64,000 nt of DNA from Auanema rhodensis. Its lineage: Eukaryota; Animalia; Nematoda. A model generated the notes under the pieces. It saw only the letters and a list, made by a program, of their open reading frames with translations, had not been told where the DNA came from and ran no database searches. The translations under genes were made by a program, and so were the position numbers. Position 1 is the first letter of the stretch. Each line of letters opens with the position of its first letter. Shown piece after piece: positions 5,745 through 64,000 of the stretch. The stretch spans positions 9,362,001-9,426,000 of the forward strand of contig OZ059896.1 of assembly GCA_964057225.1 (NCBI GenBank). The letters run 5' to 3'.

Positions 5745-7290
5745 ATGAAACATGGTTTACGAATCGACAATCTTAGTTCACGAATATTGTCAGTTAAAAA
5801 AGAGGTATGTTTACTTTTAATATACATGTATATATATATATATCAATTGAATCATATTATATGATACCTTATACTATATATTATATTATATATTTAATAA
5901 ATATTCATTTTCTTTTATTTTAGGTATGGATTAAACTATTTATAGTAATATTAATATGTTCATATTCTCTATATATAGTACTTAAAGAAGATCAAAGGTT
6001 TGTTTCATCATAACTATTCATTTTCATATTTTATCTTTTTTTTTTTCATTTTAGAACAGAAATTGATACGTTGAGGACAAATGTCAAATCAAGTGCAGTT
6101 GATAAATTACCAAAAAAGGGAAAATTGTTTTGTTGGGTTCAAACTTCTCCAAAATATCATAAAACTCGGGTAGCTTTTCCTAACTATTTGAATTTATTTA
6201 TATATAATTCATTTATTATTTTATAATTTTTTTAAAAATATATTAAGGTACCAGCAGTTAATAGTACATGGCTAACACGTTGTGATCATGGTCAATTCTT
6301 TTCATCAGAAACAATAGAAGATAGCTCAATACCACATACTGTGTTATTTGAATCAATGGAAGATTCGTGGTATCAATTATATAGAAAAACACGTTATGCA
6401 TTTTATCATATTTATACTTCAATTTCCTCAGATTTTGAATGGTATCTTAAGGTAATATTATTATTTTTTAATATTTTAAACTTATTCTCACAGGCTGATG
6501 ATGATACTTATGTTATTGTTGAACATTTATTAGAATATTTATCAACTTTGAATAGTAGTAAACCATACTTGATAGGACATACATTCAAACCATTTTTAGT
6601 TAGTCATATTCGTTTTTTTTTAATTTTCTCAAATCATTTTAATTTTTATAGGAACATGGATATGTTGCTGGTGGAGCTTATGCAATCTCTAAAGAAGCAT
6701 TAAAGATATATGCTGAACAATTATATAATAATACCTCTGATTGTTTATTAACTGGAGAATTTGAAGATCTTGAAATTAGCAGGTTTGTTTCGAAATATTA
6801 ATAATTGTAAAAGCTGATTTATTTTGATAATTGTATACCCACTTGACACATGTATGTACAAAATCGTATGAGTTTTATATACATGTATATAATATTCAGA
6901 AAAATATAATATTTGAATATTCTTATATTAAAATAGAAATTATTAATTTAAAAAAATGAAATGTTTCAGATGTTTTGCCAGCAAAAATATTTTTCCAATT
7001 GATACGAGAAATTCAAAAGGTCAACAACGCTTCCATCCGGAATCACCTTTAACTATTTTGAATAAAGCCGAAGAAACCGATGAATATGCTATGAATACAG
7101 TATTAATAGTATCAAACATTTTCTAATTTATGATATAATCTTGTTTATTCAGGGTGAACAAGCATTTGGTATTGACACTATTACATTTCATCATCTAAAA
7201 CCATCAGATATTAGAATATTAGATGCAGTATTATATAAGATAAAATCTCCTCAACTTTCAGAATTCTTCAACAAAAAAATCAATGATTAA
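5745..7290 (+). CDS. Core-1 beta-1,3-galactosyltransferase-like (C1GALT1/fringe-like, GT31), type II membrane protein
   Basis: N-terminal hydrophobic anchor WIKLFIVILICSYSLYIVL; LFCWVQTSPKYHKTR, VNSTWLTRCD, WYLKADDDTYVIVEHL (DxD), GYVAGGAYAISKEAL, EDLEISRCF, QRFHP, TITFHHL; TAA at 7288-7290. Confidence 0.85.
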
Positions 7291-9392: not shown

Positions 9393-10927
9393 ATGAAGAT
9401 CATTGCGTTGGCCGTGATTCTGCATACAGTATTCCTTGGTATTGTTCAAGCAACGGTTAGCGAATATTCACATTTCACATCTTTTTAAAACAAAACATTT
9501 CCAGATTGACAAATGTGATGTATGTCTGAAAATAGCAACTCTTGCTAAGAAATGTGGAGATGGTAAAATTAGAATTATGGTAGTGTTGATACTTTTTATT
9601 CTCCTTCCAGATTACGAGGAGACAACGAAAGCGAAGGCTATGAAGGAAGTCGATGAGTACAATGACGAGGAAAAAGAATTTTTTAAAAATGAATTAAAGT
9701 AATTATTTTATTTTAGAAATATACATATCTTATCTATCTATTATATTTGTAGTTGTCATTGGGAAAAATATTACGCGGATGCTAATAGCCCTACAATTGC
9801 TGGAACTAATCCTCGTTCAACTTGCGCTGATACTGCTTGCTGTCCAGCTTCTGTAAGAAAAAAAATATTAATTTTCAAAATTATATTCTTTAAGGATCAA
9901 ATTGCAAATTTTACTACTGTTGATCTTACTAACACCAACAAACATTTCTCAAAAGATCGATGTGTTGTTCCGAAAATTATTTTACTTCACCATACGGTGA
10001 CAAAAACTATTGAAGAAACCTTACATGTAATGCAACAGGTTCCTGTTTCAGTACAATACATTGGTAATTTATAATAAAAACTGTACAAGTTATGAATTAT
10101 TTGAATTAGTTGCTAGAAATGGAACTATTTATCAGCTTTTCAATGATGCTGTTCGAGCTTGGCATGCCGGTGCTGGAACATTTATGGAAGTTGGAGATGT
10201 TAACACCTATTCCGTTGGCATCGAAATGGTTAACCATGGAGATGAGCCATTTGATACTGAACAGGTAATAATGTAAGCTAAACATGAAGCTTTAATGAGA
10301 AATTTAAAGATAAAATCAGTGAAACTGCTAGTTGATACATTGAGACTTCGTTGGCGTATTCGTGATAACTATGTGATTGGTCACATGGAAATTTCGTGAG
10401 TTTTCCTTGAGATAGACGAAAATATGATTTTGCTGTTAAGCCCTGATCGAAAGCAAGATCCTTCTGGTTATTTTCCATGGTCAGATTTGAATGACCACTT
10501 GGGTATTTTCCCAAAATTATACCAGACTAATATGAGTCCCGATGATATGAAGACTGTCTTAATCAACAGTAGTACAGGAACAGCTGATGAAATTAAAACT
10601 CTTCAAGATGACCTTAAGAAGCAAGTTTTTTATTTTTTTTTATTTTTTCAAGTATTAAATCTTAAGTTGGGGATATACCTACTTGGCAATGCAACCAGGA
10701 GTCCTTGATCGTAACACTACGTTTAATATTCTTGCCTTCAACCGTAGATATGCTCCTGAAGTGTTTGTGAAAGAAGTGATAATTAAAGCAAATCATTTAA
10801 ATTAAATTTTAAATTTCAGACCATAGCTGATGACAACATGATTCTTAATCCTCTGAACAACCAATGGTATCAAGTATCACAAGAACGACTATTGCGTCTA
10901 TTGAACTTACTTCCATTGCTTAAATAA
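9393..10927 (+). CDS. Secreted zinc N-acetylmuramoyl-L-alanine amidase (Amidase_2, AmiD/AmpD-like) with N-terminal saposin-like domain and C-terminal peptidoglycan-binding-like domain; 10 exons
   Basis: Signal peptide MKIIALAVILHTVFLGIVQA; Cys-rich CDVCLKI...NPRSTCADTACC. Amidase motifs IILLHHT, VSVQYIV.RNGTIYQL, RAWHAG, NTYSVGIE, VIGHMEISPDRKQDP.GYFPW. C-terminal IKTLQDDL..WGY...GVLDRNT...AFNRRY. Contiguous spliced frame with one GC-AG intron. Confidence 0.88.
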
Positions 10928-11132: not shown

Positions 11133-11954
11133 ATGCAAGCTATTGTGATTCTATTACTTCTATCAATAATATGTCTTACATTGAGTAATGTATGTTTTTC
11201 ATTTATATTTCTGATTTTTTCCTTTCACTAGTTAATTATAATTGTATTGTATATGTTATTATAATAGGAAGACCGATACAACATTTGTATTGATTTAGCC
11301 AAAAGAGCAAAGAAACAAGCTAATGGTTCGAAGAAATACATTGATAATAATTGAATATAGTACATTATAGGTACTGGGGTAAAAGCTCTCCAAGATGCAT
11401 CTTACTACTTTGGAAACGAAAAAAGATTTTATACGGATGAATTGAAGTAAATTTTTTATTTTTTTAATAATATAAACTCTCATCTTATTTCTATTAGATC
11501 AATCATTTCTCAAAAGATCGATGTGTTGTTCCGAAAATTATTTTACTTCACCATACGGTGACAAAAACTATTGAAGAAACCTTACATGTAATGCAACAGG
11601 TTCCTGTTTCAGTACAATACATTGGTAATTTATAATAAAAACTTTACAAGTTATAAATTATTTGAATTAGTTGCTAGAAATGGAACTATTTATCAGCTTT
11701 TCAATGATGCTGTTCGAGCTTGGCATGCCGGTGCTGGAACATTTATGGAAGTTGGAGATGTTAACATCGTCATTATATTCCGGAAGCATTTGAGAAGGAG
11801 GCTAGTTTCGAAAAACAAAAAATTTAACAATTTATTGTTTTTTTAGGGATTTGCGGGAGAATTAACTGTTACTAATCCTTATAATCAGTAATGGTTCAAG
11901 TTATCTAAAGAAAGATTGGAACGCCTTCTAATTCCTTTGCCTACTTTAATTTAA
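11133..11954 (+). pseudogene. Chimeric pseudogene paralog of the amidase gene
   Basis: Own diverged signal and saposin-like exons (MQAIVILLLLSIICLTLSN, EDRYNICIDLAKRAKK). A 263-bp near-identical copy of 9943-10205 lies at 11504-11766, followed by a frame-shifted jump to a diverged C-terminus (HRHYIPEAFEKE; NPYNQ*WFKLSKERLERLL) with an in-frame stop. Confidence 0.8.
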
Positions 11955-12230: not shown

Positions 12231-14163
12231 TTACAGTTCCACTAGATAACCGTTATAGTTATTAACAGTGACAAGCTGTTGCGAAGTATCAAGACTAGGT
12301 CGGCTTGTTTGTGTGTGCCATACTAGAAGTTCCTGCTCCTAAAAATCAAAATGTATTTCTACATGTCAGCTTGTGAATGAAGTTTCAACAAACCAAACAC
12401 TCATCATTTTACTCAAAAATAGATAATATTAGTTATGTTAATTAGGTGATTACACAAAATTACAAATATATATATGTCTATTATACTATTTATTGTGTAC
12501 CTGTTTTCTTCTTTTCCGTTTCTTTTTCATTTTCTTCCTTTTTTTTGTGATCTGATGTTTCCGTCTGAAATCATTATAAAGGATATGGTTATTGTGCTTT
12601 GGTTAGTTAAACATCATATATAACAAATAGCTAACATTATTTTCTTTGATCTTATATTCGTATATGAATCCATTTAAATCAGCTTTGCTCATATCATAAT
12701 TAGGTTGATTACTCTTTGTGTGCCATACAACAATATCACGATCGTGCTACAACATAATAACTAGATTATTAGATACATAGTTGGTTGATTTATGAAAATA
12801 TTATTTCAATATAATTTGTATTTGAATTCTATTTTCACCTCACCTCTCTATCATATCCAAATGGTTCAATATCTTTACGTGTTAATCCCATATCTTCTAT
12901 TAAACAAGTTTCTGGTGCTCCACCACCGCGACCACAAGAAGTACCAAACACTGCTGTCGAGCTGAAAGCATATTGTCTTTCTCTATTGAATATACAACTA
13001 AGTTTATACTTGAATACAACTCTTAGATTAATACCAAAACCAGCCATATCCACAGCAAACATTCGGGATGGATTCCACTTCACACGAAAACCGACAACAG
13101 TTCCATTTACAACATCAGGTGATTCAACTGGGGCTCCTCCAACCATACCTATTGGTTACAGAAAGTATTAATGATTAGGCTTTTTTTTAAAAAACAGCTT
13201 ACCAACAGCCCATAATCCAAGCTTTTTAACATTTCGTAAATACTGATTGAATAAACGAATATCATATGAATTGTCATCATCGCCAAAGTATAAAACACCC
13301 TCTTTATGGCCATTCAAAATCTCTTTTTGATTTTTTCTCAAATAATTCAATGCTACCGTTCTTTGATACCATCCACGCTCGAAAACAGAATTTTGTCTCA
13401 GATTGTATACAATAATGACCTACTTGGATATCCAGTAATTGTTTTGGCTGCTAAATAAGAATATGGTAATCCAGTTCGATTGAGAAGCCGCTCAATATAT
13501 TTATGTTTTTTTTCTGAATCTTCAATAACAATCCAATGTAAATCTTTGATCAACATTAATGTATTTGCCATTCTAAAGAAAGCATTATATAATATTATAT
13601 TTAATGAATGAACTATTTATAAAAACCTAGTTAAATCTGCGAGTCTTGTAGCTCTTTTGTATGTTGGAGTGATGACCACAACTAACGGTTGTTTTGCCCC
13701 AGAAAAAAAAGGCATCTGATTGAAAACAGAGCTGGAAAAACTGATCAAATAGTGTTTGAATAGGATTATATAATACTATACCTATCTAAAGATGTACGAA
13801 AAAATGTAAAAACAAGAAATGATGTGATGAAAAACATGAAAAACTTGAAAATATGATAACGTCCATATCTCATTTGTCTACGCATATCTCCTGAAACTAA
13901 GAAATAGTTAAAATAATATAAATAATATGAAGAATATCAAATACATACCTACAGGAAATCCCCATCGTCTATCGACATCCTTCTCACAAAGTTTATCCCA
14001 AGCTTCAGTATTCCCCTTCACTATAATTGAAATCAGAAATATAGATTGGTGAAGATATACAGATCATTTAGAAAAAATGGGATGTACAAACACAAAGTGT
14101 TCAATGTAAAATATATGGTTTATGGAATAAAATATAAACTTACTTAGTTATAAGCAATTGCAT
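12231..14163 (-). CDS. GT43 glucuronosyltransferase (B3GAT/GlcAT; glct/sqv-8 family) with two alternative 3' ends
   Basis: VVVITPTYKRATRLADLTR, LHWIVIED, RGWYQRTVALNYLR, GVLYFGDDDNSYD, FAVDMAGF, PETCLIEDMG and terminal VWHT motifs; N-terminal TM segment. Start codon is less certain. Confidence 0.88.
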
Positions 14164-57646: not shown

Positions 57647-57850
57647 CTAAATATGACAAATATTAGTATGTGATAAAGAGAGGGAATTAAAACAAAGAAT
57701 TGAATTGTAATTAATTTCACAAAATTTTCATTCAAAATCATTAGAGTACCGTGTCACTGTATGTTTTATCGATAAACTACACTTTTTCTATTGACCACTA
57801 GTTTGTTGGAGCCCAATTGATCTGGCGCCATGTATGCTAGCACATCATAA

Positions 57851-57923
57851 GGTCTTGTGGTGTAGTGGTTATCACGTCTGCTTTACACGCAGAAGGTCGT
57901 CGGTTCGAACCCGGCCAAGACCT
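57851..57923 (+). tRNA. tRNA-Val(TAC), first of 26 TAC copies in the array
   Basis: Acceptor GGTCTTG/CAAGACC, A box TGGTGTAGTGG, anticodon arm TCTGC-TT[TAC]AC-GCAGA, B box GGTTCGAACCC, TTTT terminator about 5 nt downstream. Confidence 0.97.
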
Positions 57924-59128
57924 GTTCTTTTGAAGGATTTTAGTCCAAAATCATTAGAGTACCATGTCACTGTATGTTTTATCGATAAACTACACTTTTT
58001 CTATTGACCACTAGTTTGTTGGAGCCCAATTGATCTGGCGCCATGTATGCTAGCACATCATAAGGTCTTGTGGTGTAGTGGTTATCACGTCTGCTTTACA
58101 CGCAGAAGGTCGTCGGTTCGAACCCGGCCAAGACCTGTTCTTTTGAAGGATTTTAGTCCAAAATCATTAGAGTACCATGTCACTGTATGTTTTATCGATA
58201 AACTACACTTTTTCTATTGACCACTAGTTTGTTGGAGCCCAATTGATCTGGCGCCATGTATGCTAGCACACCATAAGGTCTTGTGGTGTAGTGGTTATCA
58301 CGTCTGCTTTACACGCAGAAGGTCGTCGGTTCGAACCCGGCCAAGACCTGTTCTTTTGAAGGATTTTAATCCAAAATCAGCAGAGTACCGTGTCACTGTA
58401 TGTTTTATCGATAAACTACACTTTTCCTATTGACCACTAGTTTGTTGGAGTCCAATTCATCTGGCGCCATGTATGCTAGCACATCATAAGGTCTTGTGGT
58501 GTAGTGGTTATCACGTCTGCTTTACACGCAGAAGGTCGTCGGTTCGAACCCGGCCAAGACCTGTTCTTTTGAAGGATTTTAATCCAAAATCATCAGAGTA
58601 CCGTGTCACTGTATGTTTTATCGATAAACTTCATTTTTCCTATTGACCACTAGTTTGTTGGAGTCCAATTCATCTGGCGCCATGTATGCTAGCACATCAT
58701 AAGGTCTTGTGGTGTAGTGGTTATCACGTCTGCTTTACACGCAGAAGGTCGTCGGTTCGAACCCGGCCAAGACCTGTTCTTTTGAAGGATTTTAATCCAA
58801 AATCATCAGAGTACCGTGTCACTGTATGTTTTATCGATAAACTTCATTTTTCCTATTGACCACTAGTTTGTTGGAGTCCAATTCATCTGGCGCCATGTAT
58901 GCTAGCACATCATAAGGTCTTGTGGTGTAGTGGTTATCACGTCTGCTTTACACGCAGAAGGTCGTCGGTTCGAACCCGGCCAAGACCTGTTCTTTTGAAG
59001 GATTTTAATCCAAAATCATTAGAGTACCGTGTCACTGTATGTTTTATCGATAAACTTCATTTTTCCTATTGACCACTAGTTTGTTGGAGCCCAATTGATC
59101 TGGCGCCATGTATGCTAGCACATCATAA

Positions 59129-59201
59129 GGTCTTTTGGTGTAGTGGTTATCACGTCTGCTTTACACGCAGAAGGTCGTCGGTTCGAACCCGGCCAAGACC
59201 T
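59129..59201 (+). tRNA. tRNA-Val(TAC) variant G7>T with acceptor-stem mismatch (copy 7; repeated at 62537-62609)
   Basis: GGTCTTTTGG instead of GGTCTTGTGG. Confidence 0.85.
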
Positions 59202-60619
59202 GTGCTTTTGAAGGATTTTAGTCCAAAATCATTAGAGTACCGTGTCACTGTATGTTTTATCGATAAACTACACTTTTCCTATTGACCACTAGTTTGTTGG
59301 AGTCCAATTCATCTGGCGCCATGTATGCTAGCACATCATAAGGTCTTGTGGTGTAGTGGTTATCACGTCTGCTTTACACGCAGAAGGTCGTCGGTTCGAA
59401 CCCGGCCAAGACCTGTGCTTTTGAAGGATTTTAGTCCAAAATCATAAGAGTACCGTCTCACTGTATGTTTTATCGATAAACTACATTTTTCCTATTGTAC
59501 ACTAGTTTGTTGGAGCCCAATTGATCTGGCGCCATGTATGCTAGCACATCATAAGGTCTTGTGGTGTAGTGGTTATCACGTCTGCTTTACACGCAGAAGG
59601 TCGTCGGTTCGAACCCGGCCAAGACCTGTTCTTTTGAAGGATTTTAATCCAAAATCATCAGAGTACCGTGTCACTGTATGTTTTATCGATAAACTACATT
59701 TTTCCTATTGACCACTAGTTTGTTGGAGCCCAATTGATCCGGCGCCATGTATGCTAGCACATCATAAGGTCTTGTGGTGTAGTGGTTATCACGTCTGCTT
59801 TACACGCAGAAGGTCGTCGGTTCGAACCCGGCCAAGACCTGTTCTTTTGAAGGATTTTAATCCAAAATCATCACAGTACCGTGTCACTGTATGTTTTATC
59901 GATAAACTACACTTTTCCTATTGACCACTAGTTTGTTGGAGCCCAATTGATCTGGCGCCATGTATGCTACCACATCATAAGGTCTTGTGGTGTAGTGGTT
60001 ATCACGTCTGCTTTACACGCAGAAGGTCGTCGGTTCGAACCCGGCCAAGACCTGTTCTTTTGAAGGAATTTAATCCAAAATCATTAGAATACCGTGTCAC
60101 TGTATGTTTTATCGATAAACTACATTTTTCCTATTGACCACTAGTTTGTTGGAGCCCAATTGATCCGGCGCCATGTATGCTAGCACATCATAAGGTCTTG
60201 TGGTGTAGTGGTTATCACGTCTGCTTTACACGCAGAAGGTCGTCGGTTCGAACCCGGCCAAGACCTGTTCTTTTGAAGGATTTTAATCCAAAATCATCAG
60301 AGTACCGTGTCACTGTATGTTTTATCGATAAACTACATTTTTCCTATTGACCACTAGTTTGTTGGAGCCCAATTGATCTGGCGCCATGTATGCTAGGAGA
60401 TCATAAGGTCTTGTGGTGTAGTGGTTATCACGTCTGCTTTACACGCAGAAGGTCGTCGGTTCGAACCCGGCCAAGACCTGTTCTTTTGAAGGATTTTAAT
60501 CCAAAATCATAAGAGTACCGTCTCACTGTATGTTTTATCGATAAACTACACTTTTCCTATTGACCACTAGTTTGTTGGAGTCCAATTCATCTGACGCCAC
60601 GTTTGCTAGCACATCATAA

Positions 60620-60692
60620 GGTCTTGTGGTGTAGTGGTTATCACGTCTGCTTCACACGCAGAAGGTCGCCGGTTCGAACCCGGCCAAGACCT
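60620..60692 (+). tRNA. tRNA-Val(CAC), copy 14
   Basis: TCTGC-TT[CAC]AC-GCAGA with T-stem GCCGG/CCGGC. Confidence 0.95.
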
Positions 60693-60832
60693 GTGCTTTT
60701 GAAGGATTTTAGTCCAAAATCATTAGAGTACCGTGTCACTGTATGTTTTATCGATAAACTACACTTTTCCTATTGACCACTAGTTTGTTGGAGTCCAATT
60801 CATCTGGCGCCACGTTTGCTAGCACATCATAA

Positions 60833-60905
60833 GGTCTTGTGGTGTAGTGGTTATCACGTCTGCTTCACACGCAGAAGGTCGCCGGTTCGAACCCGGCCAA
60901 GACCT
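60833..60905 (+). tRNA. tRNA-Val(CAC), copy 15
   Basis: TCTGC-TT[CAC]AC-GCAGA with T-stem GCCGG/CCGGC. Confidence 0.95.
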
Positions 60906-61897
60906 GTGCTTTTGAAGGATTTTAGTCCAAAATCATAAGAGTACCGTCTCACTGTATGTTTTATCGATAAACTAAATTTTTCCTATTGTACACTAGTTTG
61001 TTGGAGCCCAATTGATCTGGCGCCATGTATGCTACCACATTATAAGGTCTTGTGGTGTAGTGGTTATCACGTCTGCTTTACACGCAGAAGGTCGTCGGTT
61101 CGAACCCGGCCAAGACCTGTTCTTTTGAAGGATTTTAATCCAAAATCATAAGAGTACCGTCTCACTGTATGTTTTATCGATAAACTACATTTTTCCTATT
61201 GAACACTAGTTTGTTGGAGCCCAATTGATCTGGCGCCATGTATGCTAGGACATCATAAGGTCTTGTGGTGTAGTGGTTATCACGTCTGCTTTACACGCAG
61301 AAGGTCGTCGGTTCGAACCCGGCCAAGACCTGTTCTTTTGAAGGATTTTAATCCAAAATCATCAGAGTACCGTGTCACTGTATGTTTTATCGATAAACTA
61401 CATTTTTCCTATTGAACACTAGTTTGTTGGAGCCCAATTGATCTGGCGCCATGTATGCTAGCACGTCATAAGGTCTTGTGGTGTAGTGGTTATCACATCT
61501 GCTTTACACGCAGAAGGTCGTCGGTTCGAACCCGGCCAAGACCTGTTCTTTTGAAGGATTTTAATCCAAAATCATCACAGTACCGTGTCACTGTATGTTT
61601 TATCGATAAACTACATTTTTCCTATTGAACACTAGTTTGTTGGAGCCCAATTGATCTGGCGCCATGTATGCTAGCACGTCATAAGGTCTTGTGGTGTAGT
61701 GGTTATCACGTCTGCTTTACACGCAGAAGGTCGTCGGTTCGAACCCGGCCAAGACCTGTTCTTTTGAAGGATTTTAATCCAAAATCATCACAGTACCGTG
61801 TCACTGTATGTTTTATCGATAAATTACACTTTTCCTATTGACCACTAGTTTGTTGGAGCCCAATTGATCTGGCGCCATGTATGCTACCACATCATAA

Positions 61898-61970
61898 GGT
61901 CTTGTGGTGTAGTGGTTATCACGTCTGCTTCACACGCAGAAGGTCGCCGGTTCGAACCCGGCCAAGACCT
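61898..61970 (+). tRNA. tRNA-Val(CAC), copy 20
   Basis: TCTGC-TT[CAC]AC-GCAGA with T-stem GCCGG/CCGGC. Confidence 0.95.
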
Positions 61971-64000
61971 GTTCTTTTGAAAGATTTTAATCCAAAATCA
62001 TTACAGTACCGTGTCACTGTATGTTTTATCGATAAACTTCATTTTTCCTATTGACCACTAGTTTGTTGGAGTCCAATTCATCTGGCGCCATGTATGCTAG
62101 CACATCATAAGGTCTTGTGGTGTAGTGGTTATCACGTCTGCTTTACACGCAGAAGGTCGTCGGTTCGAACCCGGCCAAGACCTGTTCTTTTGAAGGATTT
62201 TAATCCAAAATCATCAGAGTACCGTGTCACTGTATGTTTTATCGATAAACTTCATTTTTCCTATTGACCACTAGTTTGTTGGAGTCCAATTCATCTGGCG
62301 CCATGTATGCTAGCACATCATAAGGTCTTGTGGTGTAGTGGTTATCACGTCTGCTTTACACGCAGAAGGTCGTCGGTTCGAACCCGGCCAAGACCTGTTC
62401 TTTTGAAGGATTTTAATCCAAAATCATTAGAGTACCGTGTCACTGTATGTTTTATCGATAAACTTCATTTTTCCTATTGACCACTAGTTTGTTGGAGCCC
62501 AATTGATCTGGCGCCATGTATGCTAGCACATCATAAGGTCTTTTGGTGTAGTGGTTATCACGTCTGCTTTACACGCAGAAGGTCGTCGGTTCGAACCCGG
62601 CCAAGACCTGTGCTTTTGAAGGATTTTAGTCCAAAATCATTAGAGTACCGTGTCACTGTATGTTTTATCGATAAACTACACTTTTCCTATTGACCACTAG
62701 TTTGTTGGAGTCCAATTCATCTGGCGCCATGTATGCTAGCACATCATAAGGTCTTGTGGTGTAGTGGTTATCACGTCTGCTTTACACGCAGAAGGTCGTC
62801 GGTTCGAACCCGGCCAAGACCTGTGCTTTTGAAGGATTTTAGTCCAAAATCATAAGAGTACCGTCTCACTGTATGTTTTATCGATAAACTACATTTTTCC
62901 TATTGTACACTAGTTTGTTGGAGCCCAATTGATCTGGCGCCATGTATGCTAGCACATCATAAGGTCTTGTGGTGTAGTGGTTATCACGTCTGCTTTACAC
63001 GCAGAAGGTCGTCGGTTCGAACCCGGCCAAGACCTGTTCTTTTGAAGGATTTTAATCCAAAATCATCAGAGTACCGTGTCACTGTATGTTTTATCGATAA
63101 ACTACATTTTTCCTATTGACCACTAGTTTGTTGGAGCCCAATTGATCCGGCGCCATGTATGCTAGCACATCATAAGGTCTTGTGGTGTAGTGGTTATCAC
63201 GTCTGCTTTACACGCAGAAGGTCGTCGGTTCGAACCCGGCCAAGACCTGTTCTTTTGAAGGATTTTAATCCAAAATCATCACAGTACCGTGTCACTGTAT
63301 GTTTTATCGATAAACTACACTTTTCCTATTGACCACTAGTTTGTTGGAGCCCAATTGATCTGGCGCCATGTATGCTACCACATCATAAGGTCTTGTGGTG
63401 TAGTGGTTATCACGTCTGCTTTACACGCAGAAGGTCGTCGGTTCGAACCCGGCCAAGACCTGTTCTTTTGAAGGAATTTAATCCAAAATCATTAGAATAC
63501 CGTGTCACTGTATGTTTTATCGATAAACTACATTTTTCCTATTGACCACTAGTTTGTTGGAGCCCAATTGATCCGGCGCCATGTATGCTAGCACATCATA
63601 AGGTCTTGTGGTGTAGTGGTTATCACGTCTGCTTTACACGCAGAAGGTCGTCGGTTCGAACCCGGCCAAGACCTGTTCTTTTGAAGGATTTTAATCCAAA
63701 ATCATCAGAGTACCGTGTCACTGTATGTTTTATCGATAAACTACATTTTTCCTATTGACCACTAGTTTGTTGGAGCCCAATTGATCTGGCGCCATGTATG
63801 CTAGGAGATCATAAGGTCTTGTGGTGTAGTGGTTATCACGTCTGCTTTACACGCAGAAGGTCGTCGGTTCGAACCCGGCCAAGACCTGTTCTTTTGAAGG
63901 ATTTTAATCCAAAATCATAAGAGTACCGTCTCACTGTATGTTTTATCGATAAACTACACTTTTCCTATTGACCACTAGTTTGTTGGAGTCCAATTCATCT

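Follow-up and report, generated by a model that had tools for sequence, protein, structure and literature searches.

A probable saposin-derived head on a bacterial-type peptidoglycan amidase of the nematode Auanema rhodensis

What is the 82-residue module that stands between the signal peptide and the catalytic domain of a bacterial-type peptidoglycan amidase in the nematode Auanema rhodensis, and what might it do there? The gene lies on contig OZ059896.1 (assembly GCA_964057225.1) in a stretch of 64,000 nucleotides, positions 9,362,001 to 9,426,000 of the forward strand, which is called the window here and whose own numbering is used throughout. An original prediction, made from the DNA letters, had read the module as a saposin-like domain recruited to a bacterial enzyme, which might bind or breach the outer membrane and give the amidase access to peptidoglycan. 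The analysis reported here leads to a modified answer. With a probability of about 0.6 for the explanation as a whole, exons 2-4 encode a diverged domain of the saposin-like protein (SAPLIP) family, which was joined to the amidase in an old fusion and now serves as the accessory head of a secreted enzyme. For the narrower statement that the module is a derivative of the saposin fold, confidence is high.

The gene has ten exons on the forward strand (Table 1) and a coding sequence of 1116 nt for a protein of 371 aa, and is set in AT-rich DNA with introns of ~45-55 nt. In a single spliced transcript it joins, in this order, a putative signal peptide, the module, an Amidase_2 domain and a tail resembling peptidoglycan (PG)-binding domains. 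All nine introns, with phases 0,1,2,0,1,0,2,2,0, are confirmed by spliced transcript contigs from four small runs of one study; these contigs cover exons only and bear on splicing, not on the level or tissue of expression. The junction 9455/9505, which connects the signal-peptide exon to the module, was seen in contigs of runs X1, X3 and X4, and the contigs further include 9562/9611, 9698/9753, 9852/9895 and every junction downstream. One of the latter, 10620/10667, occurs in contigs of all four runs and spans intron 8 (10621-10666), a GC-AG intron with a GC donor (GCAAGT...AG). As the contig junctions are exact to the exon, the gene is transcribed and spliced as modelled. The peptides quoted in the original prediction are found where it had put them, in exons 2-4 between signal peptide and amidase, and the phase-0 introns that it saw on either side of the module are borne out by transcript junctions and phases alike; the introns inside the module are in phases 1 and 2. 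Its length, given at the time as ~83 aa, is 82 aa (246 nt), with two split codons for D and N. A search of the 181-Mb genome of the species found exon 4 a single time, with no second copy of this exon and just one other amidase fragment.

Table 1. Features of the amidase gene and its surroundings, in window coordinates.
Feature	Position	Strand	Remarks
Exon 1	9393-9455	+	Putative signal peptide, hydrophobic (MKIIALAVILHTVFLGIVQAT), read from the letters; followed by a phase-0 intron
Exon 2	9505-9562	+	Helix 1 of the module (IDKCDVCLKIATLAKKCGD); CxxC pair (saposin C1 and C2) and an extra Cys (KKC)
Exon 3	9611-9698	+	Helix 2 and start of helix 3 (YEETTKAKAMKEVDEYNDEEKEFFKNEL); very acidic and polar
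Exon 4	9753-9852	+	Remainder of helix 3 with NCHWxKYYxDAN, loop, and terminal TCxDTxCCP (C5 and C6) (CHWEKYYADANSPTIAGTNPRSTCADTACCPAS); phase-0 intron downstream
Exons 5-8	9895-10063, 10110-10264, 10310-10395, 10441-10620	+	Amidase_2, AmiD/AmpDh2 type
Exons 9-10	10667-10775, 10820-10927	+	PG_binding_1-like region and clade-specific tail (NQWYQVSQERL); stop codon included
Whole gene	9393-10927	+	Exons 1-10
Tandem paralogue	11133-11951	+	Truncated and frame-broken
Glyco_transf_43 exon	6341-6703	+	E-value 1.9e-14
Fringe-like open reading frame	12835-13146	-	Weak likeness

Relatives were collected chiefly by querying exon 6 against 1.84 billion representative proteins; searches for homologous proteins did not bring up the protein of the A. 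rhodensis gene itself. The orthologue of Auanema sp. JU1783 (P0002) has 371 aa and 82% identity in exon 6. Strongylids are represented by a protein of 360 aa from Cylicocyclus nassatus (P0004) and an N-terminally truncated one from Necator americanus (P0003). Three paralogues of Plectus sambesii (P0007, P0171, P0172) are forms with a CUB domain, and Diploscapter pachys has a protein of 236 aa (P0041). Further members are P0027, from a 1188-bp JGI transcript-like contig; P0194, which is 71% identical to P0027, full length at 368 aa and equipped with a signal peptide; and P0011, called on a 1162-bp transcript-like contig (L006). On the latter contig the signal peptide and a canonical saposin lie in frame 3 (L006:12-365, forward strand) and the amidase in frame 1 (L006:175-1119, forward strand), which indicates a frameshift in the contig or a broken transcript; the called protein thereby hides the saposin.

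Three of these relatives, P0027, P0194 and the translation of L006, carry the module in canonical form. Their cysteines follow the pattern C-x2-C, ~28 aa, C, 10-11 aa, C, ~25 aa, C-x5-C, and helix 3 of each has one further Cys, that of the motif CQY. Canonical and rhabditine modules align over their full length, with CxxC on CxxC, CQY on CHW and C-x5-C on C-x4/5-C, and the CxxC of A. rhodensis exon 2 falls on that of P0002, P0004, P0027 and L006. In BLASTP, the module of P0027 matches that of Cylicocyclus over its whole length at 8e-8 and that of Auanema sp. JU1783 at 2e-3. A profile of the whole family run against PDB sequences retrieved 15 matches, of which 11 are SAPLIPs aligned end to end, each of them marginal (E 0.02-1.3). 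No usable match came from a feature search of the protein Atlas with P0002 and P0027.

In A. rhodensis the outer cysteines, CDVC in exon 2 and C-ADTA-CC in exon 4, line up with C1, C2, C5 and C6, and they match these four positions in alignments with P0027, L006, saposin A and saposin B. The canonical central pair C3/C4, kept in P0027, P0194 and L006, has been replaced by Asp and Phe in A. rhodensis (alignment A4) and by Ala or Asp and Tyr in the orthologues. The idea that the central cysteines had merely been displaced does not survive this comparison: the Cys of CHW is an extra one, specific to the family and present in the canonical relatives as well, and that of KKC occurs only in A. rhodensis. 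The predicted outer disulfides (C1-C6 and C2-C5) and the helical core are retained, the central disulfide is lost, and the module is acidic and polar in the A. rhodensis lineage. Its net charge is about -6, and the grand average of hydropathy (GRAVY) of exons 2, 3 and 4 is +0.25, -1.66 and -0.54, against +0.15 for the canonical module of P0027. Identity to Auanema sp. JU1783 is 58, 36 and 69% in the three exons; with 82% in exon 6, the amidase changes more slowly than the module. Three elements, CxxC, NCHWxKYYxDAN and TCxDTxxCP, are conserved in A. rhodensis, Auanema sp. JU1783 and strongylids. The module is no chance open reading frame: it is conserved in the orthologues P0002, P0004 and the N-terminally truncated P0003.

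The fold was tested by proxy, with the module of Auanema sp. JU1783 (P0002) standing for the A. rhodensis protein and that of P0027 for the canonical form. AlphaFold predicts four helices for the P0027 module, with a predicted local distance difference test (pLDDT) score of 88.8. Foldseek returned for it almost only saposin-family chains, with template modelling (TM) scores of 0.73/0.79 for saposin A at a root-mean-square deviation (rmsd) of 2.0, 0.76/0.86 for saposin C at an rmsd of 1.8, and 0.60 for AOAH; saposins A and C each have probability 1.0, although their E is just ~0.01. In VIA, a structural scan of 48,161 PDB representative chains that is independent of Foldseek, the nine best chains for P0027 all have the saposin fold: Na-SLP-1 (Z 11.9), NK-lysin (10.8), saposin D (9.5), granulysin (8.8), AOAH (7.7), caenopore-5 (7.2), amoebapore A (7.1), CDNF (6.6) and pERp1 (6.3). 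The first unrelated chain follows at Z 5.6. For the Auanema module, whose model also has four helices, the first three ranks of the same scan went to NK-lysin (Z 6.7, rmsd 2.8), caenopore-5 (6.3) and Na-SLP-1 (6.0), over 74 residues each, and the top 18 further include granulysin, saposin D, CDNF and pERp1. A non-saposin fold, which would have counted against the original prediction, was looked for in this way, and the proxy models rank SAPLIPs first. The ESM Atlas model of P0002, which does not depend on the alignment made here, matches clusters of surfactant protein B and prosaposin at TM 0.56-0.59, among generic helical matches.

In the catalytic part of the protein, exon 6 alone matches Pfam Amidase_2 at 2.1e-11 and 44.7 bits (cut-off 26), and the orthologues score 94-99 bits. 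The closest solved structures, as found with the orthologue P0002, are Pseudomonas aeruginosa AmpDh2 (2e-21) and Escherichia coli AmiD (3e-15), and the alignment spans both the catalytic and the C-terminal domain. Zinc ligands in Amidase_2 enzymes are His, His and Asp, and the catalytic residues are Glu and Lys. The invariant columns of alignment A1, H134, E197, H235, K243 and D245 in P0002 numbering, correspond to LLHHT, GIEMVN, IGHMEI and RKQDP in A. rhodensis, and the predicted His/Glu/His/Lys/Asp positions of a zinc amidase are intact there. The domain opens with its single Cys (DRCVVPK). The C-terminal region is less sharply defined: PG_binding_1 (cut-off 23 bits) scores 14.5 in P0002, 13 in P0004, 24.7 in P0027, 24.4 in P0007 and 27.5 in P0011, and exon 9 gives no match.

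Bacterial homologues with the same N-terminus were looked for, and those sampled (254-277 aa) are without the module; their alignment to the nematode protein begins only at about residue 110, and the module is therefore not bacterial. A related-locus search with the full-length alignment likewise returned only bacterial amidases, all without the module, and the alignment of the module itself held no stretch conserved enough for such a search. In a quick maximum-likelihood tree of uncertain root, from which the order of fusion and loss events is read, the nematode members fall into a single clade (100% support), whose long stem arises from within the bacterial amidases. Necator P0003 clusters with the A. 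rhodensis orthologues (100% support), and the sister of the Plectus CUB forms is P0027 with its canonical saposin (95% support), the rhabditine forms branching outside. Intron positions and phases are identical in A. rhodensis and the two orthologue genomes checked, those of Auanema sp. JU1783 (L007) and Cylicocyclus (L008). Identical introns, together with a neighbourhood shared with Auanema sp. JU1783, place the three-exon module already in the common ancestor of the rhabditines compared. The fusion is no recent recruitment in A. rhodensis: it is ancient within nematodes, and the module has decayed in the A. rhodensis lineage. The simplest order of events would be a saposin fusion before the lineages split, a later exchange of the Plectus head for CUB, and decay of the saposin in rhabditine forms.

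Several observations on the N-termini of other members stand beside this history. In Plectus P0007, P0171 and P0172 a CUB domain occupies the place of the saposin, as if the N-terminal domain of a horizontally acquired enzyme had been swapped. The Diploscapter protein P0041 has no module and misses an internal segment of the amidase, and a Cys-rich stub (PCAPCTTC) follows its signal peptide; its missing parts probably reflect an error of the gene model, the other possibility being real loss. The notion that the saposin took over from a bacterial lipoprotein anchor is not supported, as no obvious lipobox was seen in the sampled bacterial homologues, which include P0067 and P0079 as the nearest in the tree.

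How far the saposin assignment can be trusted depends on a set of results that weigh against it. Pfam SapB_1 (PF05184) and SapB_2 (PF03489) have no match at E<=10 in exons 3 and 4, P0002 or P0004, and even in the canonical P0027 and L006 SapB_1 reaches only 11.7-13.4 bits (cut-off 25.2; E 0.08-0.27). When the profile was built from rhabditine modules alone, no saposin was retrieved from PDB sequences, which makes the assignment a transitive one. The model of the Auanema module is of moderate confidence (pLDDT 70.4), and its alignment held the A. rhodensis exons as separate rows as well as a canonical member. Unrelated helical proteins appear in its VIA scan from Z 5.7, barely under the best value of 6.7; given this, and the canonical member in the alignment, the Auanema fold result would be weak if it stood alone. 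Foldseek with that model against PDB is not significant (E 3.5), although NK-lysin is ranked first. These failures, and the ease with which helical bundles attain middling Z scores, are what could be said for a module that is no saposin at all, being instead a lineage-specific, Cys-bearing helical peptide that resembles CxxC...CxxxxC by chance. Such a reading is now largely refuted and extremely improbable. It has to contend with canonical six-Cys saposins that occur at the same position in the same clade and align with the rhabditine module throughout, the extra Cys included, and with SAPLIPs in the top three of all chains scanned with the Auanema model. Of the proposal of a saposin domain before an amidase, the descent from a SAPLIP stands, by homology and fold; what has to be qualified is its state, which is degenerate and without a SapB match in Pfam.

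What such a head would do is suggested chiefly by its cysteines and its surface. In the favoured explanation the module would no longer be a free pore-former; it would be an accessory domain held against the catalytic domain, with a probable disulfide from the CHW Cys of helix 3 to the lone Cys with which the amidase begins. The helix-3 Cys is peculiar to this family and co-occurs with the Cys on the amidase side, which is present in 7/7 members that bear the module; both are missing in the Plectus CUB forms. Mature Cylicocyclus protein has exactly six cysteines (C1, C2, CHW, C5, C6 and the amidase-side Cys), and that of A. rhodensis has eight. Co-occurrence of the two cysteines and the six-Cys protein of Cylicocyclus favour a saposin head pinned by a disulfide. 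Counted on the other side are the odd number of cysteines in Auanema sp. JU1783 and the fact that interdomain disulfide and lipid binding alike are what we infer from sequence. A docked module may help the enzyme to engage a lipid-embedded or envelope-associated substrate, by analogy with AOAH and acid sphingomyelinase, and in view of its acidity it might do so at low pH in the gut lumen. The enzyme would most likely serve to digest or detoxify bacterial cell wall in a stage exposed to bacteria. Active permeabilization of membranes, in which a saposin of the caenopore or NK-lysin type breaches the outer or cytoplasmic membrane and lets the amidase reach peptidoglycan, the two together being a chimera that lyses in two steps, draws on the fold class shared with NK-lysin, caenopore-5 and amoebapore, on the secretion of the protein and the need of its partner enzyme to reach peptidoglycan, and on the likeness of the canonical P0027 module, by its GRAVY, to ordinary saposins with a hydrophobic core. 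Acidic saposins can also enter membranes at low pH. However, the net charge of about -6, the GRAVY of -1.66 in the middle exon and the lost central disulfide make a free, cationic pore-former of the caenopore kind unlikely, and the conserved extra Cys suggests pinning to the enzyme instead of free oligomerization. Membrane attack is accordingly given little credence, and in A. rhodensis it looks less likely than a docked accessory role in lipid or envelope binding. Slightly more credence, though still not much, is given to the module as a relic, that is, a saposin fold kept as a mere structural cap, folding aid, pro-segment or spacer, with no lipid role and with its decay reflecting relaxed constraint. 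This agrees with the lost central disulfide, the polar surface and the faster change of the module relative to the amidase (36-69% vs 82% identity to Auanema), with the replacement by CUB in Plectus and the absence of the module from the annotated Diploscapter protein, and with loss of the first Cys in an adjoining pseudogene copy (described below). Against it stands the conservation of NCHWxKYYxDAN...TCxDTxxCP, CxxC and the exon structure across A. rhodensis, Auanema and strongylids, which argues for continued selection on the module.

The accessory head favoured here can be set beside several systems already known. Schwarz et al. (2015; PMC4617383) described a hookworm amiD-like amidase (Acey_s0012.g1873 / NECAME_15163) as a domesticated bacterial Amidase_2 gained by horizontal transfer. 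According to that report, the Ancylostoma gene Acey_s0012.g1873 has nine introns and is strongly expressed in infective L3 larvae; the gene was recorded in only two nematodes, the word saposin occurs zero times and no N-terminal domain is mentioned (PMC4617383). The A. rhodensis gene belongs to the same family and has nine introns as well. The clade defined here adds Auanema, Cylicocyclus, Diploscapter, Plectus and three transcript contigs to the hookworm members, and the saposin-like module to their N-terminus. No paper was found in which a saposin domain and a peptidoglycan amidase are connected, in agreement with the earlier remark that the architecture was not recognized as described. Both the transfer of the amidase and fusions of saposins to hydrolases are already known; a saposin-like head on a peptidoglycan amidase seems to be undescribed. 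Domain-database models miss the module, and the databases therefore cannot show the link between saposin and amidase: the family is annotated only as 'amidase', and Pfam-based architecture searches miss the module entirely.

AOAH and acid sphingomyelinase share with the A. rhodensis protein an N-terminal saposin-fold domain before the catalytic domain of a hydrolase of the secretory pathway. The small subunit of AOAH is disulfide-linked to the large one, a parallel to the pair proposed between the CHW Cys and the amidase Cys. The catalytic partner of the saposin in these two enzymes is a lipase or a phosphodiesterase with a lipid as its substrate; in A. rhodensis it is a zinc peptidoglycan amidase that came from bacteria and has no obvious lipid substrate, and the saposin domain lacks the central disulfide. 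The best structural matches, caenopore-5 (SPP-5), NK-lysin, granulysin, amoebapore and Na-SLP-1, have the same closed bundle of four helices with outer disulfide staples. These stand-alone SAPLIPs are free chains of ~80 aa with three disulfides, and the pore-formers among them are cationic or switched by His, whereas the A. rhodensis module is part of a fusion, keeps just the two canonical outer pairs, carries a charge of about -6 and is hydrophilic. AmpDh2 of P. aeruginosa and AmiD of E. coli are bacterial lipoproteins without a saposin domain, and among solved structures they are nearest to the enzyme part, with an alignment that runs through Amidase_2 and the C-terminal PG-binding-like region. 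The CUB-amidases of Plectus sambesii belong to the same clade as the A. rhodensis protein and have a signal peptide, a metazoan extracellular domain, Amidase_2 and PG_binding_1; they differ in having CUB in place of saposin and in lacking both the helix-3 and the amidase-side Cys.

The gene family offers an example of what becomes of a captured bacterial gene in an animal: it acquired introns and a signal peptide as well as an extracellular domain of the host, flanked by introns in phase 0, and its N-terminal head was afterwards remodelled or swapped across nematode lineages. A more far-reaching proposal holds that a nematode saposin able to engage lipid or lipopolysaccharide was combined with the acquired amidase into a two-module antibacterial enzyme, in which the saposin brings the enzyme onto the Gram-negative envelope or across it, in the manner of engineered 'artilysins', and that the head then diversified into canonical saposin, degenerate saposin and CUB. 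This proposal is speculative and is considered improbable. If the saposin head does target envelopes, it would embody a natural design principle for lytic enzymes against Gram-negative bacteria, and the family would be a new class of effectors in nematode gut immunity or digestion, carried by hookworms and livestock strongylids.

Directly downstream of the gene lies the truncated tandem paralogue (Table 1). This copy possesses a signal-peptide exon of its own as well as diverged counterparts of exons 2 and 3, in which the 58-nt exon and the phases are kept; Tyr has taken the place of the first Cys in CxxC. An equivalent of exon 4 is missing, and the degenerate last exon contains an in-frame TAA near 11889. 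A patch of 267 nt (11500-11766) is 98.9% identical to 9939-10205, intron included, and the copy stops abruptly at 11766; identity of this degree that extends through an intron suggests recent gene conversion. The reading of 11133-11951 as a second functional gene was rejected on account of the broken frame, the missing exon and the in-frame stop.

In the wider neighbourhood, the Glyco_transf_43 exon and the weak Fringe-like open reading frame flank the amidase gene, and in Auanema sp. JU1783 (L007) the orthologue has Glyco_transf_43/MSP genes on one side and a Fringe gene on the other. The last 6 kb of the window (57733-64000) have a GC content of up to about 0.43 and a strong negative AT skew. 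The best-scoring match to exon 6 was P0001, a protein of 940 aa from the mussel Dreissena polymorpha, in which 15 short repeats match residues 13-30, around RAWHAG; such tandem repetition of part of an amidase is odd.

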